Source of the DNA: Macrostomum lignano
Taxonomy: Eukaryota
Length of the DNA stretch: 64,000 nt
Direction: 5' to 3'
Assembly (NCBI GenBank): GCA_002269645.1
Contig: NIVC01000365.1
Coordinates: 310,001-374,000, forward strand
Shown piece by piece: positions 10,901 through 62,588 of this stretch; position 1 is the first letter of the stretch; each line of letters begins with the position of its first letter. The notes below the pieces were generated by a model. That model searched no databases, was not told the DNA's origin, and was given only the letters and a program-made list of their open reading frames with translations. The position numbers were made by a program, and so were the translations under genes.

Positions 10901-13004
10901 TGGATGGTTGCTGACTGGATGTATGGTTGTGACTGGATTGTTGCTGACTGGATTGTTGCTGACTGGATGGACGGTTGCTGACTGGATGGTTGCTGACTGG
11001 ATGTATGGTTGTGACTGGATTGTTGCTGACTGGATGGATGGTTGCTGACTGGATGGACTGTTGTTGACTGGATGGTTGCTGACTGGATGGATGTTTGCTG
11101 ACTGGATGGTTGCTGACTGGATGGTTGCTGACTGGATGGTTGCTGACTGGATGGTCGCTGACTGGATGGTTGTTGACTGGATGGTTGCTGACTGGATGGA
11201 CGGTTGTTGACTGGATGGTTGCTGACTGGATGGATGATTGCTGACTGGATGGTTGCTGACTGGACGGTTGCTGACTGGATGGATGGTTGCTGACTGGACG
11301 GTTGCTGACTGGATGGACGGTTGCTGACTGGATTGTTGCTGACTGGATTGTTGCTGACTGGATGGACGGTTGCTGACTGGATGGTTGCTGACTGGATGTA
11401 TGGTTGTGACTGGATTGTTGCTGACTGGATTGTTGCTGACTGGATTGTTGCTGACTGGATGATTGGTTGCTGACTTGATGGACTGTTGTTGACTGGATGG
11501 TTGCTGACTGGATGGATGTTTGCTGACTGGATGGTTGCTGACTGGATGGTTGCTGACTGGATGGTCGCTGACTGGATGGTTGTTGACTGGATGGGTGCTG
11601 ACTGGATGGACGGTTGCTGACTGGATGGCTGCTGACTGGATGGCTGCTGACAGGATGGCTGCTGACTGGATGGTTGCTGACTGGACGGATGGTTGCTGAC
11701 TGGATGGTTGCTGACTGGATGTATGGTTGTGACTGGATTGTTGCTGACTGGATGGATGGTTGCTGACTGGATGGACTGTTGTTGACTGGATGGTTGCTGA
11801 CTGGATGGATGTTTGCTGACTGGATGGACTGTTGCTGACTGGACGGTTGCTGACTCGATGGATGGTTGCTGACTAGATGGTTGCTGCCTGGATGGTTTCC
11901 GACTGGATGGATGTTTGCTGACTGGATGGTTGCTGACTGGACGGATGGTTGTGACTGGATTGTTGCTGACTGGATGGACGGTTGCTGACTGGATGGTTGC
12001 TGACTGGATGGTTGCTGACTGGATGTATGGTTGTGACTGGATTGTTGCTGACTGGATTGTTGCTGACTGGATGGACGGTTGCTGACTGGATGGTTGCTGA
12101 CTGGATGTATGGTTGTGACTGGATTGTTGCTGACTGGATGGATGGTTGCTGACTGGATGGACTGTTGTTGACTGGATGGTTGCTGACTGGATGGATGTTT
12201 GCTGACTGGATGGTTGCTGACTGGATGGTTGCTGACTGGATGGTTGCTGACTGGATGGTCGCTGACTGGATGGTTGTTGACTGGATGGTTGCTGACTGGA
12301 CGTATGGTTGTGACTGGATTGTTGCTGACTGGATGGTTGCTAACTGGATGGACGGTTGCTCACTGGATGGCTGCTGACTCGATGGCTGCTGACTAGATGG
12401 CTGCTGACTGGATGGTTGCTGACTGGATGTATGGTTGTGACTGGATTGTTGCTGACTGGATTGTTGCTGACTGGATGGACTGTTGTTGACTGGATGGTTG
12501 CTGACTGGATGGATGTTTGCTGACTGGATGGTTGCTGACTGGATGGTTGCTGACTGGATGGTCGCTGACTGGATGGTTGTTGACTGGATGGGTGCTGACT
12601 GGATGGATGGTTGCTGACTGGATGGTTGCTGACTGGATGGTTGCTGACTGGATGTATGGTTGTGACTGGATTGTTGCTGACTGGATTGTTGCTGACTGGA
12701 TGGACGGTTGCTGACTGGATGGTTGCTGACTGGATGTATGGTTGTGACTGGATTGTTGCTGACTGGATGGATGGTTGCTGACTGGATGGACTGTTGTTGA
12801 CTGGATGGTTGCTGACTGGATGGATGTTTGCTGACTGGATGGTTGCTGACTGGATGGTTGCTGACTGGATGGTTGCTGACTGGATGGTCGCTGACTGGAT
12901 GGTTGTTGACTGGATGGTTGCTGACTGGATGGACGGTTGCTGACTGGATGGTTGCTGACTGGATGGTTGCTGACTGGACGTATGGTTGTGACTGGATTGT
13001 TGCT
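7928..13004. repeat. ~5.1 kb satellite with a 15-bp core (gactggatggttgct), 19- and 29-bp variants, and 1.05-1.17 kb higher-order blocks
   Basis: Rare variant cctggatggtttccgac at 8541, 9589, 10719, 11887. Variant atgattggttgctgacttga at 9281, 10411, 11459. The array joins directly onto the Helitron ORF at 13004/13005. Confidence 0.97.
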
Positions 13005-27805: not shown

Positions 27806-29017
27806 ATGGATTCGAACGCCTCCTCTCACAGGGACAGTCAACAGGATTCGCTGTACCGCAGCCTCCTGCTGCCATCGTACGCCGTCAGCCTGACTGTGTC
27901 GCTGATCTCGCTGATCTCGCTGGTGTTCACACTATGGATTTTTGTACGCCGTCGGGACGCCACGGCCGGCGCCCGCGGCATGGTGCTGCTGATCGCCACC
28001 GACACCTTCGCCTCCATGGTGCTGGTCAGCGTCCACGTCATCAGCATTAGCGAGGTCGCCAACGTGACGATCGCCAGCACATCGGCCTGGCGGAGCTTCG
28101 CCGACATCCAGTTCACCGCCACCAACGCCAGCCTGCTGCTCCGGAACTGGTGGGTGGCCTTCCTCACCCTCGCCCGCCTCATCGTCATCCTGTTCCCGCT
28201 GCACGTCACCGAGATTCTCACCCGCCGACGCCAGGTGGTCGCCTTCGTGATCATCCTGATTGCCTCGGTGGCGATCAGCGGCGCCAGGTACGCCGAGGAG
28301 AAGGCCTGCGCCGACTCTGCCGTCGCCTCTTACGACGCTGCCGCGCCCGCCGATCCGGCCAAGGCCGTCGTGGCCAGCACCACCTCCTGCGAGAGCTTCG
28401 TGATCTTCTTCTTCGTGATGCAGACGGGCCTGCCTGTGCCCGTGGTGCTCGTCATCTCCGTGGTGCTCGCCGTGCACCTCTGCTCGGCGCCTCCGACCAG
28501 CGTCACCGAGGAGGCCGCCGCGCCATCCGCCGCTGCCCGGGCGTCCCGCGCCGCCAGGTCCTCGGTGTCGCCGCCGTCCCGACCGCAGCTGATGAAGCGT
28601 CGGGCAACGCGCATCCTGCTGGTGCTGGCGGCGACCTTCACGGTGCTGGAGGTGCCCACCCTGGTGTGCTCCATGTGCCTGTACACCTTGCCCAGCTTCA
28701 GGGCCTCGGAACTCAGCCGCCTGCTGGTCTCGCTGTCCAACTGCCTGGTGACGCTTGACACCCTGGCCAACTTCTTCGTGTTCTTCGTGTTCTCCAAGTC
28801 CTTCAAGGTGGAGGTGAAGCGCTGCCTCTGCCATCGGCTGCAGGACGGCGGAGTCGGCGGCCAGCCGAGCTCGCAGCGGCGCTGGCAGCAGCAGCAGCAG
28901 CAGCAGCAGGCGTTGCTGTTGCACAGGCGCGGCACCAGCGAGCGGCGGCGACAGCCCGGCGGCACCGTGATGGAGGCGATGGCCGAGGACTCCGGGGCGG
29001 AGCTGAGCAAGCTGTAG
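27806..29017 (+). CDS. Class A peptide-receptor-like GPCR (FMRFamide-receptor-like superfamily), intronless CDS, 403 aa
   Basis: Seven hydrophobic segments. TM3 end VAFLTLARLIVILFPL, TM6 KRRATRILLVLAATFTVLEVP, TM7 LDTLANFFVFFVFSKSFK. Poly-Q in the C-terminal tail. High GC3. Confidence 0.85.
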   Translation: MDSNASSHRDSQQDSLYRSLLLPSYAVSLTVSLISLISLVFTLWIFVRRRDATAGARGMVLLIATDTFASMVLVSVHVISISEVANVTIASTSAWRSFADIQFTATNASLLLRNWWVAFLTLARLIVILFPLHVTEILTRRRQVVAFVIILIASVAISGARYAEEKACADSAVASYDAAAPADPAKAVVASTTSCESFVIFFFVMQTGLPVPVVLVISVVLAVHLCSAPPTSVTEEAAAPSAAARASRAARSSVSPPSRPQLMKRRATRILLVLAATFTVLEVPTLVCSMCLYTLPSFRASELSRLLVSLSNCLVTLDTLANFFVFFVFSKSFKVEVKRCLCHRLQDGGVGGQPSSQRRWQQQQQQQQALLLHRRGTSERRRQPGGTVMEAMAEDSGAELSKL

Positions 29018-31816: not shown

Positions 31817-34800
31817 TCACTTGCCGCACTCCAGCTTGTGCAGGCGCCAGTGCGCCCGCTGGCAGCGCCTGTCGCAGTACAGCCTCCGTCCGGAGCAGCC
31901 GCTGCAGGCCATCAGGCGGGACGGCGGCGGGGGAGCGGCCTTACCGCAGGCGTGGCACCGCTCGCGCACCTGGGAGGCCACGGTAGCCACGCCGGTGCGG
32001 AAGGAGAGCTCCAGCTGCCGAGCCGCCAGGCAGGCCAGGTATTCATCCAGCTGAGCGCGGGTGGTCGGCACCGGGAACTCCTGGGTTGGCAAACAGGAAT
32101 GACAGGTGAAAATAATTCGAGCGCCTGCCACCCCAGCAGCTACTCCCACCCCAGCAGCTACCCAGCCTCAGCAGCTACCCCACCCTAGCAGCTACCCCAC
32201 CTCAGCAGCTACCCCAACCCAGCAGCTACCCCACCCCAGCAGCTAACCCACTCCAGCAGCTAACCCACACCAGCAGCTACCCCACCCCAGCAGCTACCCC
32301 ACACCAGCAGCTACCCCACACCAGCAGCTACCCCACACCAGCAGCTACCCCAACTCAGCAGCTACCCCAACTCAGCAGCTACCCCACCTCAGCAGCTTCC
32401 CCACCGCAGCAGCAGCTACACTACCCCCAGCCCACCTGCTTGCCGCTGTCCGGCGAGTAGAAGCTCCAGCTGGCCGAGTCCGCATCGAACCGGATCGGCC
32501 GGGCCAGCAGGCGGGAGGCCCGGCACGTCTCGGAGTTGAAGGCGCGCAGAAACTCCAGGCTGAGCTGGGCGGTGCCGGCGTGGTCGTGAGGCGAGCAGAC
32601 GGCCAGGCAGTCCAGGCTGGGGCACACCGCCACCAGGGAGCGACCGGGCATCTCGGACAGCAGGCCCGGACACCAGGAGTCGGGCCGAAGCAGGGCAAGT
32701 CCGGCCAGCATTAGGTCGGAGTGCCGCTGGGCGAGGCGGCGCACCTAAGAAATGAAAGGGCAAAATGCGATGTGTGTTTTTTTGCCTTGCACTGCGGCCA
32801 TGATGCCGCAATGATGCTAAGGAGGGTTCCCATCTTCTATGACCTCACCTGCAGCCTCTCCTGTTTTTTATGACCTCACCTGCGGCCTCTCCTGTTTTTT
32901 ATGACCTCACATGCGGCCTCTCCTGTCTTCTATGACCTCACCTGCGGCCTCTCCGTCTTCTATGACCTCACCTACGGCCTCTCCTGTCTTCTATAACCTC
33001 ACCTGCGGCCTCTCCTGTCTTTTATGACCTCACCTGCAGCCTCTCCTGTTTTTTATGACCTCACCTGCGGCCTCTCCTGTTTTTTATGACCTCACATGCG
33101 GTCTCTCCTGTCTTCTATGACCTCACATGCGGCCTCTCCTGTCTTTTATGACCTCACCTGCAGCCTCTCCTGTTTTTTATGACCTCACCTGCGGCCTCTC
33201 CTGTTTTTTATGACCTCACATGCGGTCTCTCCTGTCTTCTATGACCTCACATGCGGCCTCTCCTGTCTTCTATGACCTCACCTACGGCCTCTCCTGTCTT
33301 CTATAACCTCACCTGCGGCCTCTCCTGTTTTTTATGACCTCACCTTTGGCCTCTCCTGTCTTCTATGACCCACCTGCGGCCTCTTCTGTCTTTTATGACC
33401 TCACCTGCGGCCTCTCCTGTCTTCTATGACCCACCTGCGGCCTCTCCTGTCTTCTATGACCTCACCTGCGGCCTCTCCTGTCTTCTATGACCTCACCTGC
33501 GGCCTCTCCTGTCTTCATGACCTCACCTGCGGCTGCCTGCCTTCTATGACCTCACCTGCGGCCTCTCCTACGGGTTCCCAAATGGCCTCTTCAATGACCT
33601 GCCCATGGCCTCTAAACCCCCCTCACCAAACCACCGCCCTCCCCAGCAGCGGGCGCAGCCTCCATCAGCGGTCCCGCCAGCATCTCCCGATTCAACCGGT
33701 TGGCGGCCTCCTTCATCGCCTCGGCCGCGGCCGCAGCTTCAGTCACGTGACAATATCGCTCGGGCATTCGCTCGTTCACCAGTCGCAGGCTGGCCGCTGC
33801 TCCGTCCGCTGAAACGGCCAGCACCGCCAGGCCGACGGTCAGCTCGGCAGACAGGCTGGAGAGGTGCGGCGCCAGCTGGGGCCAGTCGGCCAGCTCCACC
33901 GGCCGCTCCAGCTCGGACAGCTCCGCGGCCGTCAGGTCCGCGTGCTGCCGGCTCAGCGGGAAGGCCAACGGGCGGCCATCCGCGGGAACTTCGGCGGGGA
34001 AGAGAGGGGGAATGGAAATTGCTTCGAATTATCTGACAGTTGTGTGAGCCACCAGTTTACCTCTGACAGTTGTGTGAGCCACCAGTTTACCTCTGACAGT
34101 TGTGTGAGCCACCAGTTTACCTCTGATCCCCCAGTGAGCCACCAGTTTATCTCTGATCCCTCAGTGAGCCACCAGTTTATCGCTGATTCCTCAGTGAGCC
34201 ACCAGTTTATCTCTGATTCCCCAGTGAGCCACCAGTTTATCGCTGATTCCTCAGTGAGCCACCAGTTTATCGCTGATTCCTCAGTGAGCCACCAGTTTAT
34301 CTCTGATTCCCCAGTGAGCCACCAGTTTATCTGTGATTCCCCAGTGAGCCACCAGTTTATCTGTGATTCCCCAGCGAGCCACCAGTTTATCTCTGATTCC
34401 TCAGTGAGCCCCCAGTTTATCTCCAGAGTCTTCAGTGAGCCCCAGTTTATCTCCAGAGTCTTCAGTGAGCCCCCAGTTTATCTCCAGAGTCTTCAGTGAG
34501 CCCCCAGTTTATCTCCAGAGTCTTCAGTGAGCCCCAGTTTATCTCCAGAGTCTTCAGTGAGCCCCCAGTTTATCTCCAGAGTCTTCAGTGAGCCCCCAGT
34601 TTATCTCCAGAGTCTTCAGTGAGCCCCAGTTTATCTCCAGAGTCTTCAGTGAGCCCCCAGTTTATCTCCAGAGTCTTCAGTGAGCCCCCAGTTTATCTCC
34701 TGAGTCTTCAGTGAGCCCCCAGTTTATCTCCAGAGTCTTCAGTGAGCAAACCCCTTAGCGGGCCCTACAGGGCGGCCAGATCCAGCGCTCACCCTCTCCA

Positions 34801-39136: not shown

Positions 39137-42100
39137 ATGAGAACCTCAGTCTTAGCATTGCTCCTGCTGATCTTGACTGCAGCTGTGACCACTTTCGTGG
39201 GTGAGTACCATTAGCCTCTCTGTGTGACATTTTCACTCCGACTGCGTTTCCTGTGGTGCCACATTGTCACTCCGACTGTGCCCACTGTGGTGCCACATTG
39301 TCACTCCGACTGTGCTTACTGTGGTGCCACATTGTCACTCCGACTGTGCTTACTGTGGTGCCACATTGTCACTCCGACTGTGCTTACTGTGGTGCCACAT
39401 TGGCACTCCGACTGTGCTTACTGTGGTGCCACATTGTCACTCCGACTGTGCCCACTGTGGTGCCACATTGTCACTCCGACTGTGCTTACTGTGGTGCCAC
39501 ATTGTCACTCCGACTGTGCTTACTGTGGTGCCACATTGTCACTCCGACTGTGCTTACTGTGGTGCCACATTGTCACTCCGACTGTGCTTACTGTGGTGCC
39601 ACATTGTCACTCCGACTGTGCTTACTGTGGTGCCACATTGTCACTCCGACTGTGCTTACTGTGGTGCCACATTGTCACTCCGACTGTGCTTACTGTGGTG
39701 CCACATTGTCACTCCGACTGTGCTTACTGTGGTGCCACATTGTCACTCCGACTGTGCTTACTGTGGTGCCACATTTCCCCAACTCTCCCCAATGTTCCAA
39801 TCGCCCATCACCCACAGACGCTCGCAGATCATCGTCTAGAAGTTACTCAAGCTACCGGAGTTACCGCTACTCATCTTACCGCTACTCGTCTTACCGCTAT
39901 TCGTCTTACCGCTACTCATCTTACCGCTACTCGTCTTACCGCTATTCGTCTTACCGCTATTCGTCTTACCGCTACTCGTACAGGTGAGCTACCGATACTG
40001 GGAGTTTGCGGGATGCTCAGTGCATGTTAATTTGCTCTACTCTGAAATCCTTTTAGGAGCCCACTGTACACAAGGCGGTTGTCGTCCAATCTGATGGGCA
40101 CTCTGTACTTCTCGTACGTCAGCCGGTATCCGAGGCACTTCAGCTACAGGCGGAGTGCTGTCGGCAGCTCAGGTGAGCGATTTATTGCCTCGAGAGATGA
40201 GAGTGGAAGAGAGATGAGAGTGGAAGAGAGATGAGAGTGGATGAGAGATGAGTGTGGAAGAGAGATGAGAGTGGAAGAGAGATGAGAGTGCAATAGAGAT
40301 GAGAGTGGAAGAGAGATGAGTGTGGAAGAGAGATGAGAGTGGAAGAGAGATGAGAGTGCAATAGAGATGAGAGTGGAAGAGAGATGAAAGTGGAAGAGAG
40401 ATGAGAGTGGAAGAGAGATCAGAGTGGAAGAGAGATGAGAGTGCAATACAGATGAGAGTGGAAGAGAGATGAGAGTGCAATAGAGATGAGAGTAGATGAG
40501 TGATGAGAAGCAAGCCATCAGGAATCTCCCAAGCCTCAACCCCACTCATTCCCCTGATCATTCCCCTGATTCCCCATCAGGTGGCAGCTGCACAAACCGC
40601 CTGGCCCTGAGCAACGGAAGCTACGTTGGCTCTTTCAGCTGTCCCTTCCTGGGTGACGAGCCGAGCAGCTGGACAAAATGCTGCGGCTACGAGAATGAGC
40701 AGTTCTGCTGCGACCCGGCCTACGATGAGTGAGTTCAGTAGCTGCTGGCTTCAGTGGCTAGTTACTGATCGCTGATTGGCTGTCGCTGAATGTACATTAG
40801 AGAGGCTAGTTACTGATCGCTGATTGGCTGTCGCTCAATGTACGTTAGAGAGGCTAGTTATTCGAATCGGCTTGTTCCTCCAGCTCGAATCCTCCATCCC
40901 CACAGCTCGTGGGCACTGGCCTCCCAAGGCCTGAGCTTTGTCGCCATCTTCTTCATCGTGGGAGGCTGCCTTACCGGTCTCGCCATTGTCGGCGTACTGA
41001 TCTTCTTGTGCGTGAGGAAGGGCCTCTTAAACACCAGGAGACCCGGCGTCATGACCGCGCCTACCGCCGCCACAGCCGGTAAGGCTATAGCAGATCACCG
41101 TCAACAGTTGTCTTTAGACCTGACTTGTTAAAACTGACTGCAAAATATTGCTGCTCCCCTCCCCCCCCCCAGTTGTCACCAGCCCGCCGGTCTCCGTGGC
41201 GCCCGTCCAGGCCATCAGCAAGTGGGTGCCCATGGCTCCCGGCCCTGGGCAGCCGCCGGTCGTTGGTTCGAATCCGCCACCGTATCCAACATCGAATGCC
41301 GGGCAGCCGCCGGTCGTTGGTTCGAATCCGCCACCGTATCCAACATCGAATGCCGGGCAGCCGCCGGTCGTTGGTTCGAATCCACCATCGTATCCAGCAT
41401 CGAATGCCGGGCAGCCCATCGGTAATCAGAGTTTATTGGAAATAAACCAGTGACCCCCATAAGCAGAAAGAGAAAATTGATTCCTATAAACACAACCAGA
41501 GGACATGGACCCCCGAAAACATGAAGGAGGGCATTGAACTTCAATAAGCACAAAGGGGCATTGATCCCCTATAAACACAATCGGAGGGAATTGACACTCC
41601 CTATAAACACAAATGAGGGCATTGTCCCTATAAACACAAAGGAGGGCATTGACACTCCCTATAAACACAAATGAGGGCATTGTCCCTATAAACACAAAGG
41701 AGGGAATTGACACTCCCTATAAACACAATTGGAGGGCACTGACACTCCCTATAAACACAAAGGAGGGAATTGACACTCCCTATAAACACAAAGGAGGGCA
41801 CTGACACTCCCTATAAACACAAAGGAGGGAATTGACACTCCCTATAAACACAATCGGAGGGCATTGACACTCCCTATAAACACAATCGGAGGGCAAAGGA
41901 GGGCATTGACCCCCTATAAACACAAAGGAGCGCATTGACCCCCTATAAACACAAAGGAGGGCATTGACCCCCTATAAACACAATCGGAGGGCATGACCCC
42001 CTATAAACACAAAGGAGGGCATTGACCCCCTATAAACACAAAGGAGGGCATTGACCCCCTATAAACACATAGACGGGCATGACAATTTAACGACAAGGGA

Positions 42101-42434
42101 AGGTTTTAATCTCATTTTGTATTTTTTAAGTTTTCTGAACATTAAAAAATTGATTTTGATTTGATTCTTTTGCAGGAATGGAAAACCAAGGATTCGAACC
42201 ACCGCCCTACCCGCTGTACCCGCCATCGTATCAGAATCCGTACGCCAATGCGAGTAAGAGCTATAGTTATTGGTTTCATTTTTATTGCCTTTTCGCCTTC
42301 TCGGGCATATAATAATCAGAAATTCTGAGAAGCTACTCACAGTAGGTTGGTTGCATGCAGTGTTCTAAAAATGAAAAACTCCAATAATAACGAAAATTAC
42401 CTCCAACTTGGCAGACGCTCCAGATTATGGCTGA
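39137..42434 (+). CDS. Shisa-like single-pass membrane protein A with an N-terminal (RYSSY)7 repeat, ~337-350 aa
   Basis: Exons 39137-39200 (signal peptide), 39818-39983 (DARRSSSRSY..(RYSSY)7), 40057-40172, 40581-40728 (C..F.CP..CCG..FCC), 40906-41078 (TM), 41173-41421 (Pro-rich, PPPY), 42176-42253 and possibly 42415-42434; the alternative is read-through to a stop at 42312. Phases 1,2,1,2,1,1 are all compatible. Confidence 0.82.
39225..39775. repeat. 34-bp intronic minisatellite (gtggtgccacattgtcactccgactgtgcttact), ~16 copies
   Basis: Intron 1 of Shisa-like gene A. Confidence 0.95.
40192..40505. repeat. 17-bp intronic minisatellite (gagatgagagtggaaga)
   Basis: Intron 3 of Shisa-like gene A. 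Confidence 0.9.
41450..42070. repeat. ~29-32 bp intronic minisatellite (ccctataaacacaaaggagggcattgacact)
   Basis: Intron 6 of Shisa-like gene A. Confidence 0.9.
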
Positions 42435-42867
42435 GCGATGAAGCATGGAAGACGCTGGCGGCTGACGATTTTTAACGAAGTTGATGAAGCTTAAAAAACA
42501 GTTTTAACACTTAAAGTGCCGCTTCGGTGATGAGATTTTGTGTTGTCAATTGCAGTTGTAGAATGTTTTTTTTCAAAGCCTGCATGCCGAATCTGTTATG
42601 TACTTTAATGAAACAAATCAGAACGCTGTTCTTGAACATTACAATTTCAGTTCCACCTGTCTTCTATTGGGTCTTTTCTCTCAGTTTTAATTCTATTCTT
42701 TTTACCAAATTGATGTTTGACTTCTTACCTATTCAGGCTAAAATACACTGACTGCAATTTGTTCAGAGACCAAACAGTTTTCAATAAAGCTGCACTGATT
42801 TCCGTTGCGACTAAAGAAAATTCAGAGATTAGGCCGAAATGAGTTGTTAATGATAATATGGCAGGAC

Positions 42868-44012
<1,145 letters not shown>

Positions 44013-44337
44013 TTTCAGCCCAATAGCTAGAGAAAAGGCTTACAAGTTTCCAACTGCAAGGATATAATTTCATAGTTAAGGGTAAAATGTTGCAAAGCAG
44101 CAGGACTGAAAAAAGCAGTTTATTTGGCTCATCCTCAGCAGTGACTAAATTGGCAGCTTCAAGTAGAAGTAAAAGAAAATATCACAGAAGTTGAAAGCTT
44201 GAAAATAAGATTTGGCATTAAAAATTATAGCTGTAATTAATATTAAAGATGCCGATAGAGAATAAATATCCGGCCAGAAGAAAAAAGAAGAAAATTCATT
44301 GAGTTCTCAGTTAGAATCGCCCGTCTCAACCACTGAG

Positions 44338-44751
44338 TCAGAAGGCCGGGTGGAGACCCAGGTTGTTCTCGATGTAGTCCAGCTCCCTCTTCAGCTGGCA
44401 CTGGACGCAGCTGGCGCAGAAGCTCGTTGCGCAACAGTCGTTCAGAATGCTGCCTTTGATGTTGTACCTGGCGCGCAGCTTCACCCGGTAAGCCATGAGG
44501 GTCATGGAGCTGCCAGCACAGCCGAGACAGATTGGGGTGCAGCAGCCTTCGCCCATGCGCTGCGACAGGTTGCAGCAGAGCTGGTACGGGCCGCAGAAGA
44601 ACGTCACGACGCAGCCGCCGAGGTCCTCGCAGCAGGCCAAGAGTCCGGAGTTCCATTCGCGCAGCTGAGGCGGGTGCACCGGAGCTCCAGCCATCGGGTT
44701 GGCCTGCTGGCGCGGCTGAGCAACCACTGGGTGTACAGCTTGGGACTGCAT
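44338..44751 (-). CDS. PLAC8/cornifelin-family cysteine-rich protein, 137 aa, intronless CDS
   Basis: Family motifs WNSGLLACCEDLGGCVVTFFC and YRVKLRARYNIKGSILNDCCATSFCASCVQCQLKRE. Confidence 0.92.
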   Translation of the reverse strand: MQSQAVHPVVAQPRQQANPMAGAPVHPPQLREWNSGLLACCEDLGGCVVTFFCGPYQLCCNLSQRMGEGCCTPICLGCAGSSMTLMAYRVKLRARYNIKGSILNDCCATSFCASCVQCQLKRELDYIENNLGLHPAF

Positions 44752-45337
44752 GCTATCGGTTGCACTGAAAAATACGGATGGCTGATTTGAAATTACCTGA
44801 TTAAGGCAGGCATCACGGACAGTATTTAAATTCAGTTCACTTAAATGAAAATACCAAGCTGCCAGCCTAAACTTACGGCAGTGGCAAACTCTTACAGTGC
44901 TTGGAAAATCTTCTTGTAGACAGACTCGTCAATTTATTAGTCACTGGCAGCAGAAGCAGCAGCTCTTGCAGCCTCCTTAACCAACTGGTTATTTAACTTT
45001 TATGAACGAAAAACTATGGGGTACGGCTGGGAGGCTGGGAGGCTGAGAGGCTGAGAGGCTGGGTTTCAGCATCGATCGATCTGCATGATCCCTAGCTAGC
45101 TGCATCGCTTTCTGTCTCCAGTGCTTCGTGGATTCAGCTGCGTGCTGAGTCCGCCAAGTAGCTGACTCTGTTCCAGACCAGACAGCCATTGCTTCAGTTG
45201 CTATGGGCAACTTGACAGCAAATATGCAGCAGGCAGAGACACTGCAAAGCTTTCAAATTAAGTGAGGAGGAGGATGGGGAAGTTTAGTCCTGAAACTTGC
45301 GACGCTTTAAGTGAGAGGAATTGATGAGGAACTACAC

Positions 45338-46036
<699 letters not shown>

Positions 46037-46434
46037 CTAGGACACAGGTAGACAAACTGACCCTAAGACAGGCAATTCCCATTTGCACGTTGAGTTCTCA
46101 GTCTACGCGGTGTCACACAGAATTAATTTAATTTCGCAGCCTATTGCAAGCCACACAGGCTGCGGGAGGGAGGTCCTTGCCCCCAAAACGCAGAAAGACA
46201 AACACTGGGCAGCCGCAGTGCAGCGCCATTGTCCACCGGCCAGCACAATCCACGGCCGATTGGCCAAGCGAAGAGTGTCGCACAAAAGAGAAAAACGATA
46301 AAAATGATATGCAACTTCTGGCTCGGGCGGGGCCGCCTCTCAGCCAGTCACTCAAATTCTCTCTCAGGGCAAACCGCGAGCTCAGAGACGCTGAGGCAAA
46401 AATAAAGAATTTTCGAACAAATAGCGAGTGAGGC

Positions 46435-49400
46435 ATGCGACTCACCTGGCTGGTTGCCGGGGTGCTTCTGGCCGCTGTCCTGCTGATGGCCACGTCTGCT
46501 GGTGAGTGAGCTGGCCACCCTCTCAAGCACACCTCACCTCTCTCCAGATCCAATCTCACTTCTCTCTAGATCCGATCTCACCTCTCTCTAGATCCGATCT
46601 CACCTCTCTCTAGATCCGATCTCACCTATCTCTAGATCCGATCTCACCTATCTCTAGATCCGATCTCACCTCTCTCTAAATCCGATCTCACCTCTCTCTA
46701 GATCCGATCTCACCTCTCTCTAGATCCGATCTCACCTCTCTCTAGATCCGATCTCACCTCTCTCTAAATCCGATCTCCTTCTCTCTCTAGATCCGATCTC
46801 ACCTCTCACTAGATCCTATCTCACCTCTCACTAGATCCTATCTCACCTCTCACTAGATCCTATCTCACCTCTCACTAGATCCGATCTCACCTCTCTCTAG
46901 ATCCGATCTCACCTATCTCTAAATCCGATCTCACCTCTCTCTAGATCCGATCTCACCTCTCACTAGATCCGATCTCACTTCTCTCCAGATCCGATCTCAC
47001 CTCTCTCTAGATCCGATCTCACCTCTCTCTAGATCCGATCTCACTTCTCTCCAGATCCGATCTCACCTCTCTCTAGATCCGATCTCACCTCTCTCTAGAT
47101 CCGATCTCACCTCTCTCTAGATCCTATCTCCCCTCTCTCTAGATCCGATCTCCTTCTCTCTCTAAATCCGATCTCACCTCTCACTAGATCCTATCTCCCC
47201 TCTCTCTAGATCCGATCTCACCTATCTCTAAATCCGATCTCACCTCTCTCTAGATCCGATCTCACCTCTCACTAGATCCGATCTCACTTCTCTCCAGATC
47301 CGATCTCACCTCTCTCTAGATCCGATCTCACCTCTCACTAGATCCGATCTCACTTCTCTCCAGATCCGATCTCACCTCTCTCTAGATCCGATCTCACCTC
47401 TCTCTAGATCCGATCTCACCTCTCACTAGATCCGATCTCACTTCTCTCCAGATCCGATTTCACCTCTCTCTAGATCCGATCTCACCTCTCACTAGATCCG
47501 ATCTCACTTCTCTCCAGATCCGATCTCACCTCTCTCTAGATCCGATCTCACCTCTCTCTAGATCCGATCTCACCTCTCACTAGATCCGATCTCACCTTTC
47601 TCTAGATCCTATCTCCCCTCTCTTTAGATCCGATCTCACCTCTCTCTAGATCCTATCTCCCCTCTCTCTAGATCCGATCTCATCTCTCTCTAGATCCGAT
47701 CTCACCTCTCTCCAGATCCGATCCCACCTCTCTCTAGATCCGATCTCACCCTAATAAGAGAAACAAACCACATCGACGTTTGCGCAGATGCGGCCAGATC
47801 TCGCGCCCGGTTCTCCTATAGGTCGCGAGCTCGATTCTCCTACAGGTCGCGAGCTCGATTTTCCTATCGGTCCCGAACTCGATTCCGCTACAGCAGAAGC
47901 AGGCGTTACTCAAGATACTCATACATGTGAGTCGGAATTAGTCGGAGTCACCCTTCTGGGTGACCTTCCTGACGAATTTGAATGACCGGGTTGAAGGACA
48001 TTTTCCCGAAGCATTATGTAGAAATATCAATTTCGTAAAATCTGACAAATTCGTAAATCCATTCGAACCCCCAGCGGCCCGATCTACTCTCGCCGCCTGT
48101 CGCCCTCGCTGATGGGCCCCGTGTACTTTGGCTACGCGTCCCGGTACCCGATGTACTTTAACTACAGGCGGGGCAGCTCCGCCCACGGCTTCGGTGAGAA
48201 ATTTGATTGCAATGCATTCTCCTCGCTTCATCGCCCAGGCCAGATTTTATTGTTCGATATTTGGGGAAATTTTTGAAATTCACTGGTTTACAAATCCAAA
48301 CCTTTAACACTTGACCAGCCAATTTGTTCGACTGGAAACGGGGGGAATTTTCGGTGGCAAAATAATGTAAAAATTATCCAAATATTTTTACTAGAGTAAA
48401 TCTTCTCTTGTGGTTTGCAAATCTGAATAAATCACCTGAGACAGATTAACCTTTTTTGTAATCTAGGTAGCTGTGAACAGTGAGTAACAATCTTAAAGAA
48501 TAGCCATCACCTGAGGAGGTACGCTCGTAGATATCTTCAGGAGTTACAATATCATATCAGGTAGACATCTTCAGGAGCTACAATATCATCTCAGGTAGAC
48601 ATCTTCAGGAGTTACTCAGGTAGACATCTTCAGGAGCTACAATCCCATCTCAGGTGGATATCTTCAGGAGTTACTCAGGTAGACATCTTCAGGAGTTACA
48701 ATATCATCTCAGGTAGACATCTTCAGGCGTGACAGTATTGTCTCAGGTAGAAATTTTATGAGGATGATGTGTACCGGATTGCCTGCCCCCTGCCCCGCCC
48801 CAGGCGAGGTGTGCACCAACCACCTGGCCCTGAGCAACGGCAGCTACGCGGGCACCTTCCACTGCCCCTTCCTGCCCGACGAGCCGCGCAGCTGGACGAA
48901 ATGCTGCGGCTTCGATGGCGAGGGATTCTGCTGCGACCCAGACTATAATGAGTGAGATGGGGCCCGAGCTCTGAGCGAAGTCTCGGTGCTGTACATGTGC
49001 ACATAGTACAGACAGAATTGATGTACACCCCACACGAGGCTAGGTTGGATGTGCATTGATGTAGAGATTAATTGTAAACTGACTTGATCGAGGCAGAATG
49101 TCAGCATGTGCAATAAGCTAAAGATCAATGTACTTTGGTACAAGCTAAGTATACATGTAAGTGTACGTTGAATGTCGGATGTGCATCGAAGCAGCTTGGA
49201 TTTAAGCGGAGGTTGGATGTACATAGTGCATTGAGTCAAGTACAAGGTTAGATGTACATGAATGTAGGAGTTGAAGCTACATGTACAATTAAGGCAGGTT
49301 GGATGTACATAGGTAGTTGCATGGATGTACATAGGAGTTGGATGTACGTAGGAGTTGGATGTACATAGGAGTTGGATGTACATAGGAGTTGGATGCACGT

Positions 49401-50446
49401 AGGAGTTGGATGTACATAGGAGTTGGATAGGATAGGAGTACATAGGATAAGAGCTGGGGATTTACATGTACATTGAGGCAGGTTGGATGCACATAGAAGT
49501 TGGATGGCATATTGATAAACATGTACTGTAAAAGCACTCAAGCATCGCTAAGCCTCCCTGCCGGCACCGCTCGCAGTTCCTGGAAGCTGGCAGTTGGCCT
49601 CGGCGCCGCCGCAATCCTCGCCATCATTGGAGGCGTCCTTCTGGCCCTGGGCCTGCTGATCGCCCTGCTCGTGTACTGCTGCTGCTGCTCGAAGAAGCGG
49701 GGCGGAAGCGGCGGAGCTGGTGAGGATGTCTGAGGGATAAAGTCTGGACTGGGAATTTTCTCACCAACGTGTGCCACAGTCTCTGATAAGCGCTATGCAG
49801 TGTCTGATAAGCACCCTGCAGTGTCTGATAGGCACCCTGCAGTCTCTGATAAGCACCCTGCAGTCTCTGATAAGCGCTATGCAGTGTCTGATAAGCACCC
49901 TGCAGTGTGTCTGATAGGCACCCTGCAGTGTCTGATAAGCACCCTGCAGTGTCTGATAAGCACCCTGCAGTCTCTGATAAGCACCCTACAGTCTCTGATA
50001 AGCACCCTGCAATGTCTGATAAGCACCCTGCAGTCTCTGATAAGCACCCTGCAACTGTGTCTGATAAGCACCCTGAAGTCTCTGATTAAGCACCCTGCAG
50101 TGTCTATCAGCGTCTTCGATTTGAAGTTCCCAAAGTCTGCGACAAGCGCCATTTCAGTTTCAACTCGCACTCGAATTGTCCGCAGGTGCCAGCGCAGCAG
50201 CGGCGGGCAGCAGCAAAGAGCCGGTCGGCGTCACGAATCCCGTGAAGCCGCCCTACCCAACCATGGAATATGGGACAGGTGAGTTCACCAATAAGCCAAT
50301 TGGCCCCGCCCACTGCCTCACATGCACATTTGCTCCGAATTCCGAATCCCGCAGTGCAACCGCCGCCGGATCGCCAGCCGGGCTCCGCCCCCTATCCGCC
50401 GCCGCAGCCACCGCCATATCCGCCCCCGTACTCGGCTCAGAGCTAG
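46435..50446 (+). CDS. Shisa-like single-pass membrane protein B with an N-terminal (RSRARFSY)3 repeat, 266 aa
   Basis: Exons 46435-46501 (signal peptide), 47788-47926 (DAARSRARFSY..), 48075-48193, 48804-48951 (Cys domain, 148 nt as in paralog A), 49577-49719 (TM + YCCCC), 50186-50278 and 50355-50446 (PPPYPPPYSAQS*). Total 801 nt with the same intron phases as paralog A. Confidence 0.85.
46545..47752. repeat. 22-bp intronic minisatellite (agatccgatctcacctctctct), ~55 copies
   Basis: Intron 1 of Shisa-like gene B. Confidence 0.96.
48520..48750. repeat. Degenerate intronic repeat (caggtagacatcttcaggagttac...)
   Basis: ~7 copies of variable length in intron 3 of gene B. Confidence 0.8.
49210..49505. 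repeat. Degenerate 17-18 bp intronic repeat (gttggatgtacatagga)
   Basis: Intron 4 of gene B. Confidence 0.75.
49778..50105. repeat. 21-bp intronic minisatellite (gtctgataagcaccctgcagt)
   Basis: Intron 5 of gene B, ~15 copies. Confidence 0.9.
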
Positions 50447-51246
50447 CCGGCGGAGAGGAGCGGGTCGGAGAGCGGCCAGAGAAAGTGTGAGCGTCTGGTG
50501 AGTCACTGCTCGCACTTCTTGCTGCTTCTGTTCGAAGGGAGGGAAGAATGTAGGCGAGGAGAGAAGAAGGGAGGAGAGAAGGGAGGGAGAAGGGAGGCAA
50601 GGAGGGAAGAAGGGAGGAGACAAAAGAGGAGAGAAGGGAGTGAAGAGGAAATAAGGGAGAAAACAAGGCAGGATGGATGTGATTTAGCCACTGAACCATT
50701 TACAACCACAATTCATCAATTGCAGACAGCGGAACTTGTGTGGACCTGTCGCTAAGGACCAATCTAAGCGGACTCAAAATATAAGAAAATCCATATTTTT
50801 CTACTGCAAGTAGCCAGTGTAGAAAATAAAATCTATATCGTTAAAATAAATAATGATAGACAACGGTATCATATTGCTTTTTTTTCATAGCACAATGCTA
50901 CGAGTATATGCGTTCGTGAATTTCATAAACTACTTGATCAAGTAATGAAAAAGCAATCTGGGTCATTTTGTGTATTTGAACCGGTCATTCATGTACTACT
51001 CGCAGTAGTCACTGCTCTACGAATCAAGAGCGACAGTCAAACAAAGACAAGGCATAAGAGTTTTCTGATTGCTGCACGTGAAGACAAAAAACTATCAAAT
51101 GTCAAATGTCAAAAATGTCAAATTAAAAAATAAAACTACAAGTTCAATAAGTTCTTAATTATAATTGCATAATTAATCTACTAATTAGCCCCACCGCTAA
51201 TCCGCAATCAGCCCCACCGCTAATCCCCAGAGTCGCGAGTCCCCCA

Positions 51247-53863
51247 TCATAGCTTGCTGCCCTTGGAGTCCCACTTGTAGAATCCCAGCCCGGTCTTGCG
51301 GCCCAGCCGGCCCTCCTCAACCAGCTTGTTGAGCATGTCGCTGGGCTTGAACAGCTCAACATTGGGGAACTTGGCGTGCCAGCCGTCCATGATGAACTTG
51401 GTGGTGTCCAGGCCCACGTAGTCGGCCAGCTCGATGGGGCCCATGGGGTGGCCGGCGCCCAGCCGCATGGCCGTGTCGATGTCCTCGGCAGTGGCGTCGC
51501 CGCGTTCCAGCATGCGGACGGCCTCGGTGAGGTAGGGCACCAGCAGGCGGTTCACGATGAAGCCGGGGGTGTCCTTGCAGGGCACGGCCGACTTGCCCAG
51601 GCTGCGGCTGAACTCCAGCAGCTGGTTGAAGGCGGCCTCCGTGATGTCCGGGGTTCGAACCACCTCCACCAGGCGCATGACCGGGACAGGGTTGAAGAAG
51701 TGCAGCCCGCCGAATGTCGGCCTGGAGTGGAGAGTGGGGCGATTCTCACTTGGGGGGGCGATTATCACTGGGGTTGGGGGCGATTCTCACTTGGGGGGGG
51801 GCGATTATCACTGGGGTTGGGGGCGATTCTCACTGGGTTGGGGGCGATTCTCACTGGGGTTGGGGGCGATTCTCACTGGGGTTGGGGGCGATTCTCACTA
51901 AGGTTGGGGGCGATTCTCACTGGGGTTGGGGGCGATTCTCACTGGGTTGGGGGCGATTCTCACGTGGGGGCGATTATCACTGGGATTGGAGGCGATTCTC
52001 ACTGGGACTGGGGGCGATTATCACTGGGATTGGAGGAGATTCTCACTGGGACTGGGGGCGATTCTCACTGGGATTGGAGGCGATTCTCACTGGGATTGAA
52101 GGCGATTCTCATTGGTTTTGGGTCAAAAGCCTTATGGCTCACTTGCGGTTCGGCACAGCCTCGGCCAGCTCGGCGATGCCCAAGGAGCTGGTGTTGGAGG
52201 CAAACAGGCAGCCAGCCGGAGCTGTTGAGTCCAGCTGGCGGTAGAGGCTGCGCTTCAGCTCCAGGTTCTCCACCACCGCCTCTACCACCAGGTCGGCTGA
52301 CTTGGCGGCGTCGGCTGCAGACTGGCTGGTGGCCAGGTTGGCCATGGTCTTGGACACCAGCTGCTTGGCCTCCTCTGGCCGGTCCTTCAGCTGCTTCTTG
52401 GCCACCCGCTCCAGGCTGGTCTGGATGCTCTGCACTGCCTTGCCCAGCAGCTGCTCGTTCAGGTCCACCAGGGTCACCTGGTAGCCAGACTGGGCTGACA
52501 CCTGTTAGGGTCAGAGTTGGGGACAGACTATGCTGAGAGGGTGCATCTTGTATACCACTATCAAGTGGGCAAACAAAAATGCTGGAAAAGTTATATTCAT
52601 TAAGTATATTTTAAGCAACATAAAGGCAACTTTAAATATCTTAGTTCCTTTAAATATAAAATAAAATGGTCTCTAAAAATTATATTTGAACACTGATTCT
52701 ATTCATAATATTTTACAATAGAATAAATAAATGAATTAGAATGAATTAGTTGTCTATAAAGTAATATAATATATAAGGGCCTAAAAAAAGCCCAATCATA
52801 TTTTAATCTATATATATGCATAACTATTGATTTCACTTCTGTTTTTCTTTTTGGTAGGTTGCAAATTGTAAGTCATATTATCAGTCAAAATAAGTTTCAA
52901 GGCAAGTATAATTTCTGAGGTTGCAATGCCATGCTGATCTATTCAGCTTTTCTATGTGAAAAAAAATTGGTGACATGAAAAACAGTCCAAAAGTTCTAGC
53001 CCAACTAAGGCTATGCAATTCTATTTATGGAGAGCTTATGTGCATGGTAGCCATTTGCCTAATGTTTTAATTGCATGCACAGCGGCTAATAGTTGGTTTC
53101 CCTCAAATCTGCATATTGCTACTAATTGAGCCTAAGTAAAACCTTATTGTTACTATATTGTTTTTATAATATTTTATCATACAACCCATGTATGTATACT
53201 ATGTATACCAAATTTAATGTAAATTCATTGCTTTTTTGTTAATTTGAATATTAATTCAAATAGTATATGACTTACAATATATGAGATAACTGTTATACAT
53301 GCAAGCTCTCTGTTCTATTTATTATAATATATTTGTATTAACTATGTATGGGTCTAGGCTATGCTCATATATAATTTTGATAAAAAATATTATCACACAC
53401 TACTATTAATACTATACTACTATACATGTAGAATATCAATTATAAGTCTAATACATTTTAGCTACATTCTTGCCCTTTTGACTGTTGCCCCTTTGATTTA
53501 TCACCCTTTAAGTTTAAATTAGTTCCTAGTCAAAACATAACAAGCAAACCCTAATTTATCATTGTCGTTGACTTATATTATAATATTAATTGCATAATAA
53601 TATAGGGTCTAGCCATCTAGGTGTAACGTGTAATCCAATTTGTTTCCCCAAACTAAAAACCTATCACAATATACAAATCTCTAAGATCTTAAATATACTA
53701 TTCTTTCCTTTTGAAAAAAATATAATAGAAGACAAAAACATACCTGCGCAATGCCAGAACCCATCAAGCCGGCCCCGATAACTGTAACTTTGCTGATTGA
53801 CCTGCTACTCATTGTGTACTGCAGACTAAACTGACGCAGAATTTGCTTTGAACACGCAAGCAT
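51247..53863 (-). CDS. HADH: Mitochondrial short-chain 3-hydroxyacyl-CoA dehydrogenase, 3 exons, ~317 aa
   Basis: Exons 53863-53744 (transit-like peptide + [15 protein letters not shown]), 52501-52143 ([18 protein letters not shown]) and 51721-51247 ([44 protein letters not shown]). Phases 0 and 2 are compatible. Confidence 0.96.
51735..52115. repeat. 22-23 bp G-rich intronic minisatellite (ggggcgattctcactggggttg)
   Basis: Fills intron 2 of HADH almost from acceptor to donor. Confidence 0.92.
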
Positions 53864-60801: not shown

Positions 60802-62588
60802 TCACTCCTCGCGCCGGCCGGTCAGCACGGCCTCGGTCCGCAGCGGCAGCAGCAGGCGCAGCAGCGACTTGGTCAGCTCGGCCTGAGCGCGCAGCAGGAT
60901 GCAGAAGTCCTCCATGCGGCCCTCCAGGCCTTCGCTCTCGTACAGGTCGGCCATGACGGTCCTGAAGCTGTCGCCGAAGCTGTCGATCAGGTAGGCGCGC
61001 TTGGCGGCGCTCGGCGCAGCGGCGATGGTACTGCGGATCAGCCCGGCCACCAGGCCGAACGGCTGCTTGGCCTTGACGGTCACCAGACAGAGCGACGTCA
61101 GCAGCATCACCAGCTCGTTGCTGGTCGACTCGCTTTTCGACATTCGACGCGCCATGCCGTTTAGCACCAGGCGGCTCACCTGGCAGCCGGCCATGAGCAG
61201 CACGCAGGCGGAGTTCTCGGACAGCCAGGCGGTGGGCAGCCTGCGCAGGGATGACAAACGGAATTGAGTCGTTAAAAAAACACAAGAGTTGCCCCAGAGT
61301 CGCAAGAGTCAACAGAGAGCTGTTTGCAATGACTCTTTAGCGATTCTTGGCATGGTAACGTTTCCAACGGGCTGCCCACTCCGCCGACTCCCCTGAGCAG
61401 GCACACAAGCGCGCGGATACGTACACTGTACTGTGCCCTGGGGGGTTGGCTTCGAAGGGCGTTAATTGCAGGAGCAGAGCCAAGCCGAGATTCCAATTTA
61501 GCCCCAAGTTAATGTGACTGCAATTGAAATCGAGCCTGGGCCGCGCTCTAGCGCCACAGACTGGCGCTCGCGCCTCACCTGGTCAGCTCTTCGAACAGGC
61601 GCGGAATTCGCGGCCGCAGCTTCTTGTCAGTGTAGAGGGCGCGCAGGGCGTCGCCAAGGCTGCCGAAGCAGGCGTCGATTTGGGCGGCGCTGGCTGCCGT
61701 GCTGCGGGACATGTCGCGCCACATCACCCGCGACTCGAACGTCGGCCCGAGGGTGACGAACAGCAGCCAGGCGGCCGGCCGGGACCGCCAGGCGGCCAAC
61801 AGGCGGCAAAAGCGGCGCCAGCGCTGCCGCTCGGAGCAGACGGCCAGGAACAGGTGGCGGATGAAGAGGCGGACGCGGAAATCGTCGACTGCGGAGACGG
61901 GAGCGCCGCCAGACGAGACGGCGAGCTCGGCGACGGTCAGCAGGGCGGGTCTCCGCCGGGAGCTGCGCGGGTCGAACAGGCGAAGCAGCGCCAGTCCGGC
62001 GGGGTCCAGCCAGCGGGCCGGCCACCCGGCGGTGAACTCGCCGACCAGCAGGCCGGCGGCCGAGTAGTGGGCGCGCACCTCCCGGATGGTGGCGCCCGGC
62101 TCGGCGGCGGCGAGGCAGGACGGCATCAGGTAGCGGTGAAGGAGCCGCAGACGGTCCGGCAAGGCGTCAAAGCAGCTGAGCCGCTTCAGCAGGCGGCCAG
62201 CGCGGACAAATTTCGAGTCGGAGCAGGCGACGTCGGAGGAGGCGGCGGCGGAGGTCGGCGAGCCGACGAGATTTGGCATGGACGCGCGGAGCAGCCTGCA
62301 GGCGTAGGCGGACTCGGTGAATTCGCGGACAAGATGGTGGAAGCTGCGGCAGGTGCAGGCCAGTTGGCCGAGATCGTCGGCGTCCAGACAGCCGCTGGCG
62401 AGGATGCGGAACAGCAGCTCCGGCGGCAGGTTGGCGAGGCCTCGGCTTGGCGGCTGCTCGCTTGGGCGGCTCCGCTTGGCCGGTGGCGCAGACGGGCTGC
62501 GGCGGCGCTTGTGGCAGTCGACTGCCGAAGCTTCGGCAGCGGCTGCGGTTGCAGACATCTGGCATAGAGTCATCCAGCGGTGCAGCAT
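60802..62588 (-). CDS. FBXO47: F-box only protein 47-like (PROM-1/FBXO47 family), 2 coding exons, ~482 aa
   Basis: Exons 62588-61579 and 61240-60802 (phase 2). F-box LANLPPELLFRIL..LGQLACTCR. Motifs recalled as FBXO47-like: GRLLKR..RL, FTAGW, RVRLF.R, WLL...GP..VMW.DM, LGDALRALY, LFEELT..PTAWLSENSA, LLRAQAEL. Confidence 0.8.

Follow-up and report, generated by a model that had tools for sequence, protein, structure and literature searches.

Two tandem genes with an arginine-, serine- and tyrosine-rich N-terminus

Two neighboring genes of the flatworm Macrostomum lignano, here called gene A and gene B, were analyzed on contig NIVC01000365.1 (assembly GCA_002269645.1). They lie within a stretch of 64,000 nucleotides (positions 310,001 to 374,000 of the forward strand), which we call the window and whose own numbering is used throughout. 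The genes are tandem paralogs. Each encodes a putative Shisa-like membrane protein in which a long extension rich in arginine, serine and tyrosine (the R/S/Y extension) stands between the signal peptide and the Cys-rich domain.

Both genes were re-spliced by hand and by script (Table 1), and every intron of both has GT-AG borders. The junctions proposed in the initial annotation of this DNA (39200/39818/39983/40057 for gene A and 46501/47788/47926/48075 for gene B) are all exact GT-AG sites, and the intron phases it called identical, 1,2,1,2,1,1, are so for the first six introns of A and B. Its model of gene A was incomplete, however, since exon 8 and intron 7, a phase 1 intron, had been missed, as shown by the UniProt protein A0A1I8INH6. 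The proposed paralogy is borne out well beyond chance: the two proteins are 43% identical (E 2e-65), and identity rises to 59% in the part that begins with exon 3 and ends with the transmembrane (TM) helix. A tblastn search of the 64-kb window found only A and B and no third copy.

Exons 2 and 3 together make up a phase 1-1 cassette in gene A (39818-40172) and in gene B (47788-48193). Skipping both exons would keep the reading frame and give a canonical Shisa-like protein, with the Cys domain straight after the signal peptide. This cassette is plausibly a trace of how the extension module was inserted.

Table 1. Genes A and B, their exons, and other features of the window
Feature	Position	Strand	Content
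Gene A	39137-42434	+	8 exons, 337 aa
Gene A exon 1	39137..39200	+	Signal peptide MRTSVLALLLLILTAAVTTFV(D); ends in phase 1; GT donor at 39201
Gene A exon 2	39818..39983	+	DARRSSSRSYSSYRSY(RYSSY)x7RYSY; coding minisatellite, 15 bp x 7.9, at 39861-39979
Gene A exon 3	40057..40172	+	Semi-conserved Tyr/Arg segment SPLYTRRLSSNLMGTLYFSYVSRYPRHFSYRRSAVGSS
Gene A exon 4	40581..40728	+	Six-Cys Shisa-type domain CTNRLALSNGSYVGSFSCPFLGDEPSSWTKCCGYENEQFCC; conserved NGS sequon
Gene A exon 5	40906..41078	+	Predicted TM helix (residues 173-201), then RKG...RR
Gene A exon 6	41173..41421	+	Predicted cytosolic tail; coding repeat, 54 bp x 3.1 (41247-41416), giving PPPY, PPPY, PPSY
Gene A exon 7	42176..42253	+	Tail; PPPY and PPSY
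Gene A exon 8	42415..42434	+	Final residues ...NAPDYG and stop; agrees with the C-terminus of A0A1I8INH6 (P0004)
Gene B	46435-50446	+	7 exons, 266 aa
Gene B exon 1	46435..46501	+	Signal peptide MRLTWLVAGVLLAAVLLMATSA(D)
Gene B exon 2	47788..47926	+	DAA(RSRARFSY)x3 RSRTRFRYSRSRRYSRYSYI; coding repeat, 24 bp x 3.1, at 47811-47885
Gene B exon 3	48075..48193	+	GPIYSRRLSPSLMGPVYFGYASRYPMYFNYRRGSSAHGF; cDNA-like contig L001 aligns from 48075
Gene B exon 4	48804..48951	+	Six-Cys Shisa-type domain
Gene B exon 5	49577..49719	+	Predicted TM helix (residues 162-190), then CCCCSKKRGG
Gene B exon 6	50186..50278	+	Predicted cytosolic tail (…NPVKPPYPTMEYGT)
Gene B exon 7	50355..50446	+	Tail end PPPYPPPY and stop
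PLAC8-family Cys-rich open reading frame (ORF)	44338-44751	-	137 aa; between A and B; Pfam PLAC8 60.9 bits
ORF with DUF6570	11873-15535	-	1220 aa; DUF6570 68.1 bits; C-terminal long coding tandem repeat (…HPVSNHPVS…/…SSQQPSSQQ…)
Intronless rhodopsin-family G-protein-coupled receptor (GPCR) ORF	2704-3705	+	7tm_1, 59 bits
Intronless ORF	27806-29017	+	403 aa; several hydrophobic stretches, GPCR-like by eye; no Pfam family at E up to 0.001
3-hydroxyacyl-CoA dehydrogenase gene	51247-52501	-	At least 2 exons; just downstream of gene B
F-box ORF	61575-62588	-	Near the window end

Protein layout and predicted structure

Proteins A and B have a common layout: a signal peptide, the R/S/Y extension, a domain with the cysteine pattern C*C*CC*CC, one TM helix and a tail with PPxY (PY) motifs. 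The hydrophobic signal sequence ends in …VDA in A and …ADA in B. The cleavage site that the initial annotation placed after this DA fits the sequence by eye, with a hydrophobic core and small residues at -1 and -3. The position of the putative mature N-terminus is also kept across the family as [DE]-A↓R-[RG]-G-G…, where the arrow marks the cut.

The extension is strongly basic in both proteins. It has 95 residues in A, with 19 Arg, 24 Tyr, 32 Ser and no Lys, Asp or Glu, for a net charge of +19. The 87 residues in B include 22 Arg, 13 Tyr, 7 Phe, 17 Ser and a single Glu, again with no Lys, for a net charge of +21. The repeat units described earlier for the two second exons, (RYSSY)x7 in A and (RSRARFSY)x3 in B, were found as reported, and in B a degenerate fourth unit, RSRTRFRY, follows. 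A Pfam scan of the N-terminal extensions by themselves gave no family at E up to 1.

The Cys domain is 41 residues long and contains an NGS sequon; in gene A its cysteines are C119, C136, CC149-150 and CC158-159. The pattern C*C*CC*CC is present in A, B and all relatives, and the cysteine columns do not vary in either family alignment (A3 and A4). Across the family, the invariant columns are C, N, F, CP, CCG and CC. A hydrophobic run, the predicted TM helix, follows in each protein, and basic residues come after each run. The tail of A has five PPxY motifs (PPPY three times, PPSY twice), three of them in a 54-bp coding repeat whose copies are 97% identical and carry one motif each. The tail of B has PPPYPPPY and KPPYP, and PPxY motifs near the C-terminus are also kept in relatives.

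AlphaFold2 was run on A0A1I8INH6 (P0004), which is near-identical to the gene A protein, with a 22-sequence family alignment. The model has a helix at residues 2-27, in the signal peptide region, and a predicted local distance difference test (pLDDT) score below 50 across the R/S/Y stretch (residues 25-59), so that the extension is predicted to be disordered. A weak short helix (62-73) lies in the exon 3 segment. The small, beta-rich Cys domain (pLDDT 75-84) and the TM helix at 151-177 (pLDDT 82-89) are modeled with higher scores, and the tail is disordered.

The extension is likely to be extracellular or lumenal, because of the N-terminal hydrophobic signal, the basic residues after the TM helix, the N-x-S/T sequon in the Cys domain, and the CUB domains that follow the same kind of stretch in a further paralog, P0031 (see below). 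A and B are therefore probably type I single-pass membrane proteins, N-out/C-in.

The repeat exons are coding

Unit length is divisible by three in each of the tandem repeats within exons (15, 24 and 54 bp) but not in most of the intronic ones (34, 17, 31/58, 22 and 34/59 bp). Differences between the exonic units are confined to silent positions. In gene A, the 15-bp unit has two variable sites, both at third codon positions, and pairwise codon comparisons give 22 synonymous and 0 non-synonymous differences. The first three 24-bp units of gene B have seven variable sites, all third positions and all synonymous (14 vs 0 pairwise). By our own arithmetic, the chance that seven of seven sites fall on third positions is about (1/3)^7, or roughly 5e-4. 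Because the unit differences are exclusively synonymous, the repeat exons are translated in this frame and, judged by this pattern, the repeat peptides are under purifying selection.

Three contigs in the Logan collection carry uninterrupted full-length ORFs: L001 (SRR28338165, 912 nt), and L002 and L003 (SRR30276812 and SRR30276804, each near 1 kb), with lengths in the range of 0.9-1.05 kb overall. All three ORFs run from a signal peptide and an R-rich stretch through the exon 3 segment, Cys domain and TM helix to a PY tail, and their nucleotides are about 76-84% identical to those of the exons. Matches of L001 stop at the borders of gene B exons, such as 48075, 49578 and 50278, and L002 ends with an AATAAA-type signal. 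We read these contigs as spliced mRNAs from species related to M. lignano. The M. lignano copies themselves are probably expressed as well. An exact-protein look-up of A0A1I8INQ7 (P0001) and P0004 returned no matching contig. The equivalents of exon 2 in the contigs, ARFRSSFRSRFRVRIGRTGRFSRYRYSYS and SRISIRVGSARYSYRYSYRASYRYTY, keep the composition of the stretch and not its sequence. The initial annotation had made the same point for A and B, and it is borne out for A, B and the relatives described below.

Copy number of the repeats also differs between genome copies, always in frame. The window has seven RYSSY units and three tail repeats in gene A, and A0A1I8INH6 has two of each. It would seem that composition is maintained and that length can change freely. 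With one 54-bp copy fewer in A0A1I8INH6, the number of WW-binding motifs in the gene A tail differs between genome copies as well.

Public gene models at the locus

The closest database protein to A and B is A0A1I8INQ7 from M. lignano (E 1.3e-62). This entry models a copy of gene B but is cut short, its first residue being an internal Met from exon 3. A0A1I8INH6 is a full-length gene A copy, including the RYSSY repeat, and carries the UniProt name 'CX domain-containing protein'. Two other models are chimeric. A0A1I8F323 (P0005) is a chimera of PLAC8-antisense sequence, exons 2-3 of gene B and HADH-antisense sequence. In A0A1I8HRM7 (P0006), sequence from further upstream that matches 33664-33933 (+) runs into the Cys-domain exon of gene A. 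The window pieces found in such models are 33664-33933 (+), 44578-44772 and 51219-52481. The public M. lignano models are thus inconsistent at this locus and call for correction.

Family assignment

The Cys domain, TM helix and PY tail had been described as Shisa-like in the initial annotation, and profile searches support this at the level of the superfamily. Gene A and P0004 each score 22.2 bits with Pfam Shisa_N, which is marginal against the cut-off of 22. Relatives score higher: 31.2 (Bugula), 30.3 (Tubulanus), 27.9, 24.3 (Lingula). A profile of 18 family members (A3) matched PDB entry 5M0W, Shisa-3, at E 2.5e-5, with F-CP…CCG…YCC aligned. Of the other comparisons that had been suggested, WBP-1 gave only a weak match, with gene B (E 0.026). 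The Pfam CYYR1 score of gene B, 23.5 bits, is below the gathering cut-off of 31, and gene A has no Pfam CYYR1 match.

The Shisa-like (STMC6) family is defined by C*C*CC*CC together with a TM helix and PY motifs (PMC5578492). Membership of A and B in this superfamily is supported by the cysteine pattern, the TM helix, the PPxY tail and the profile matches. The evidence does not extend to placing either protein in CYYR1 proper or in Shisa proper.

The comparison with Shisa (PF13908; 5M0W) finds a homologous Cys domain and the same adaptor layout overall. The match is limited to the core of the domain, though, and the Shisa-3 construct lacks an N-terminal extension. Shisa proteins retain receptors in the endoplasmic reticulum and Golgi (PMC5578492). 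Nothing points to Wnt or FGF receptors as partners of A and B.

Like A and B, CYYR1 (PF10873) has a signal peptide, a small ectodomain rich in Cys, a single TM helix whose cytosolic end carries Cys residues, and several PPxY motifs in the tail. It differs from them in that A and B have an extension of 87-95 residues before the first Cys. Bivalve CYYR1-like proteins, which match at about 3e-6 in phmmer against 1.84 billion proteins, form a separate group (P0009, CYYR1 34 bits). In P0009 and P0013, the Cys-rich region comes straight after the signal peptide, without the cationic extension of about 90 residues. The PPxY motifs of human CYYR1 bind the WW domains of WWP1, WWP2 and ITCH and drive lysosomal degradation of WWP1, and the protein is found at late endosomes (PMC11399591).

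The wider Shisa-like/STMC6 group (WBP1, VOPP1, TMEM92, CX and Drosophila CG15760) has C*C*CC*CC, one TM helix and PY motifs in common with A and B (PMC5578492). In CG15760 the six Cys follow directly after the signal sequence (PMC5578492), while in A and B two extra exons insert the cationic module.

The extension is found in several spiralian phyla

An exhaustive phmmer search with P0001 as the query gave 37 proteins at E up to 1e-3. P0001 lacks exon 2, so any R/S/Y-rich N-termini among the matches are not a product of the query. A word-indexed homolog search was lossy and missed sequences from its own query alignment: the A/B core returned P0001 only, the 18-sequence profile returned mostly metagenomic Shisa_N proteins, and the profile without the TM helix returned one oyster protein. 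The taxonomic range given here therefore rests on phmmer.

A signal peptide followed by about 60-120 residues that are rich in R, S, Y and G, nearly acid-free and poor in Lys, before the same Cys domain, was found in Bugula neritina (Bryozoa), Lingula anatina (Brachiopoda), Tubulanus polymorphus (Nemertea) and, among Mollusca, in Mya, Dreissena, Ostrea, Gigantopelta, Elysia and Liolophura. One metagenomic sequence has this layout too. Such a stretch typically has fractions of R 0.10-0.24, S 0.05-0.34 and Y 0.03-0.27, with D+E no higher than 0.08. With the flatworm included, the composition recurs in at least five phyla, and the relatives' sequences are non-repetitive. The segment just before the Cys domain can be aligned between flatworm and molluscs as GP-Y-[ST]-R…G-x-[VI]-Y-[GF]…R-Y-P, and exon 3 of gene A aligns to it in the molluscan, nemertean and brachiopod relatives. 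CYYR1-like bivalve proteins, one hemichordate protein and one horseshoe-crab protein have the Cys domain straight after the signal peptide.

A further M. lignano paralog outside the window, P0031 (A0A1I8J5J8), has a signal peptide, an R/S/Y head, two CUB domains, Shisa_N and a TM helix. Since the R/S/Y head also stands at the front of this CUB-containing protein, it behaves as a portable module.

The initial annotation knew of no Arg/Tyr/Ser repeat ectodomain in the family. As a claim of novelty this does not hold, because database relatives from Bryozoa, Brachiopoda, Nemertea and Mollusca carry the same N-terminus, a result that the annotation had itself named as one that would refute it, and the RYSSY repeat was already present in A0A1I8INH6. 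The R/S/Y ectodomain is in public protein sets and has gone unremarked there: entries for the relatives are 'uncharacterized' or have misleading automatic names, such as 'putative cuticle collagen 155' and 'CPSF6-like'. A literature search with the relatives' accessions and with Macrostomum plus Shisa found no paper describing the extension. From the sequences compared, the extension is an old trait of an undescribed subfamily, seen so far in spiralian phyla, and is not specific to Macrostomum.

Four molluscan proteins (P0008, P0012, P0018 and P0019) open on RGG-type repeats, after which comes a tract rich in Ala, Gly and Val such as WKTAAAVGVVYGL. In its order of signal peptide, basic RGG-type repeats and this tract, the N-terminus is reminiscent of the N-terminal half of Shadoo/PrP, with no match to a Pfam family.

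Surroundings of the genes

Almost every intron of A and B contains a minisatellite (39227-39775, 40192-40508, 40756-40860, 41483-42084, 46533-47750, 48527-48751, 49298-49428 and 49777-50105), with units of 34, 17, 48, 31/58, 22 (55 copies, 1.2 kb), 34/59, 17 and 21 bp. Intron length in both genes is largely made of these repeats. The PLAC8-family ORF, the single gene between A and B, is flanked by (CAGA)n/(GACA)n microsatellites at 42868-44012 (287 copies) and 45339-46036 (175 copies). Elsewhere in the window, the ORF at 11873-15535 is probably a transposon remnant; we take DUF6570 to be a Helitron-helicase-like N-terminal domain.

Proposed function and alternative explanations

Our preferred explanation, to which we give a probability of about 0.6, is that A and B are Shisa-like PY adaptors that would act with NEDD4-type ligases and whose cationic-aromatic, disordered ectodomain would capture polyanions or self-associate. 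NEDD4-family HECT ligases would dock through their WW domains on the PPxY motifs of the tail, as is established for PPxY tails of this superfamily and, by experiment, for CYYR1, and A and B would serve as trafficking and degradation adaptors. The extension would be the ligand-capture or clustering part. It could make multivalent contacts with polyanions (sulfated glycans, mucus or extracellular matrix, for instance), or it could self-associate through Arg-Tyr contacts, and capture outside the cell would in this way be coupled to ubiquitin-dependent endocytosis. The repeats would be in-frame coding minisatellites whose copy number drifts while composition is held.

A role in capture or clustering is proposed because Tyr and Ser recur at regular intervals in the polycationic extension. 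A Lys-free polycation of this kind binds sulfated or phosphorylated polyanions and self-associates by Arg-Tyr contacts. Similarly, Tyr/Ser/Arg-rich sticker sequences self-associate by cation-pi contacts and bind polyanions or surfaces. The SYSSYG regions of FUS-type proteins and mussel foot protein 3 are dominated by Tyr, Ser and Arg and disordered, as is predicted for the stretch in A and B, although the analogy is between non-homologous sequences. Those proteins are nuclear, cytosolic or secreted, whereas in A and B a TM adaptor would anchor the stretch, which would lie outside the cell or in the lumen. A and B were also considered as secreted adhesives of the mussel-foot type; they do not belong to this class, since they have a TM helix and a predicted cytosolic PPxY tail. 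Adhesion, antimicrobial action and coacervation, suggested in the initial annotation, are candidate functions. Any specific ligand for the extension is drawn from composition, and each such idea is doubtful.

Several points weigh against the adaptor explanation. Gene B by itself reaches no Pfam gathering score and has no Shisa_N match. Foldseek found no structural match for the full-length AlphaFold2 model in PDB, a model that is mostly of low confidence outside the Cys domain and TM helix. The signal peptide was judged by eye. Transcript support comes from ortholog contigs and from a UniProt gene model. What the extension would bind is purely conjectural, and the fast turnover of its sequence and copy number would fit a loosely constrained spacer too.

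This last point leads to an alternative in which the R/S/Y stretch is a tolerated coding minisatellite that acts as a flexible spacer for the Cys domain, has no binding of its own, and owes its composition to whichever units expand in-frame in a minisatellite-rich genome. We find this rather unlikely. It would be in keeping with the minisatellites in almost every intron of both genes, with the different numbers of RYSSY units (7 vs 2) and tail repeats (3 vs 2) between genome copies, and with an exon 2 that cannot be aligned between orthologs about 80% identical in their other exons. It does not predict that an acid-free, Lys-free stretch of Arg, Ser and Tyr (Gly) would recur after the signal peptide in five phyla, in non-repetitive sequences, that the repeat units would differ exclusively by synonymous changes, or that the module would also head a CUB-containing paralog. 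Cleavage offers another possibility: the proteins could be membrane-anchored precursors from which a cationic N-terminal peptide is freed at RR or RSRR as a secreted adhesive or antimicrobial peptide. Dibasic sites are present (RR after the signal peptide and YTRRLS in A, RSRR in B), and the composition resembles that of cationic Tyr/Arg-rich adhesives such as mussel foot protein 3. However, the single furin-type R-x-[KR]-R site is in B, with none in A, and the dibasic sites are not kept in the molluscan, bryozoan and brachiopod relatives. The conserved TM helix and PPxY tail also point to a function at the membrane, which makes a precursor improbable.

The two remaining alternatives concern whether the extension is made at all and on which side of the membrane it lies. 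If the main transcript skipped exons 2 and 3, the mature protein would be an ordinary Shisa-like protein and the R/S/Y exons would be minor or artefactual. The in-frame join of exon 1 to exon 4 around the phase 1-1 cassette would allow this, and three sequences lack the relevant part: A0A1I8INQ7 and A0A1I8HRM7 have no repeat and the Ostrea isoform P0044 has no N-terminus. Both repeat-less models are visibly defective, though, one starting at an internal Met and the other chimeric. The exons are included in the intron-free ortholog contigs L001-L003 and in A0A1I8INH6, and the synonymous-only variation indicates translation in this frame, so we regard skipping as very improbable. Finally, the N-terminal hydrophobic segment could be an uncleaved anchor, which would leave the Arg-rich region in the cytosol as an RS-domain-like or RNA-binding segment. 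Positive charge is far higher on the flank after this segment than on the one before and, by the positive-inside rule, a positive flank could favor cytosolic retention. Such an arrangement is extremely unlikely given the rest of the protein: the Shisa domain, rich in disulfides, would end up in the cytosol together with its sequon and the PPxY motifs would face outward, in contradiction to the topology of the family (PMC5578492), and in P0031 the CUB domains, which are extracellular, lie downstream of the same stretch.

The adaptor explanation can also be taken further. The extension might be an ancient, spiralian-wide extracellular 'sticker-spacer' that defines a distinct receptor class, with multivalent capture of polyanions (sulfated glycans, mucus or microbial surfaces), or Arg-Tyr clustering at the cell surface, coupled directly to NEDD4-dependent endocytosis by way of the PPxY tail and with repeat number as an evolvable tuning knob. 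We consider this broader form unlikely as it stands.

The usual picture of a Shisa-like adaptor is that of a small Cys knot sitting directly on the membrane, and little is known of what such ectodomains recognize. A subfamily with a long cationic extension gives a handle on what such adaptors may sense and on whether cation-pi-rich disordered regions work outside cells. Since M. lignano is genetically tractable through RNA interference and transgenesis, this idea is testable in the animal itself.

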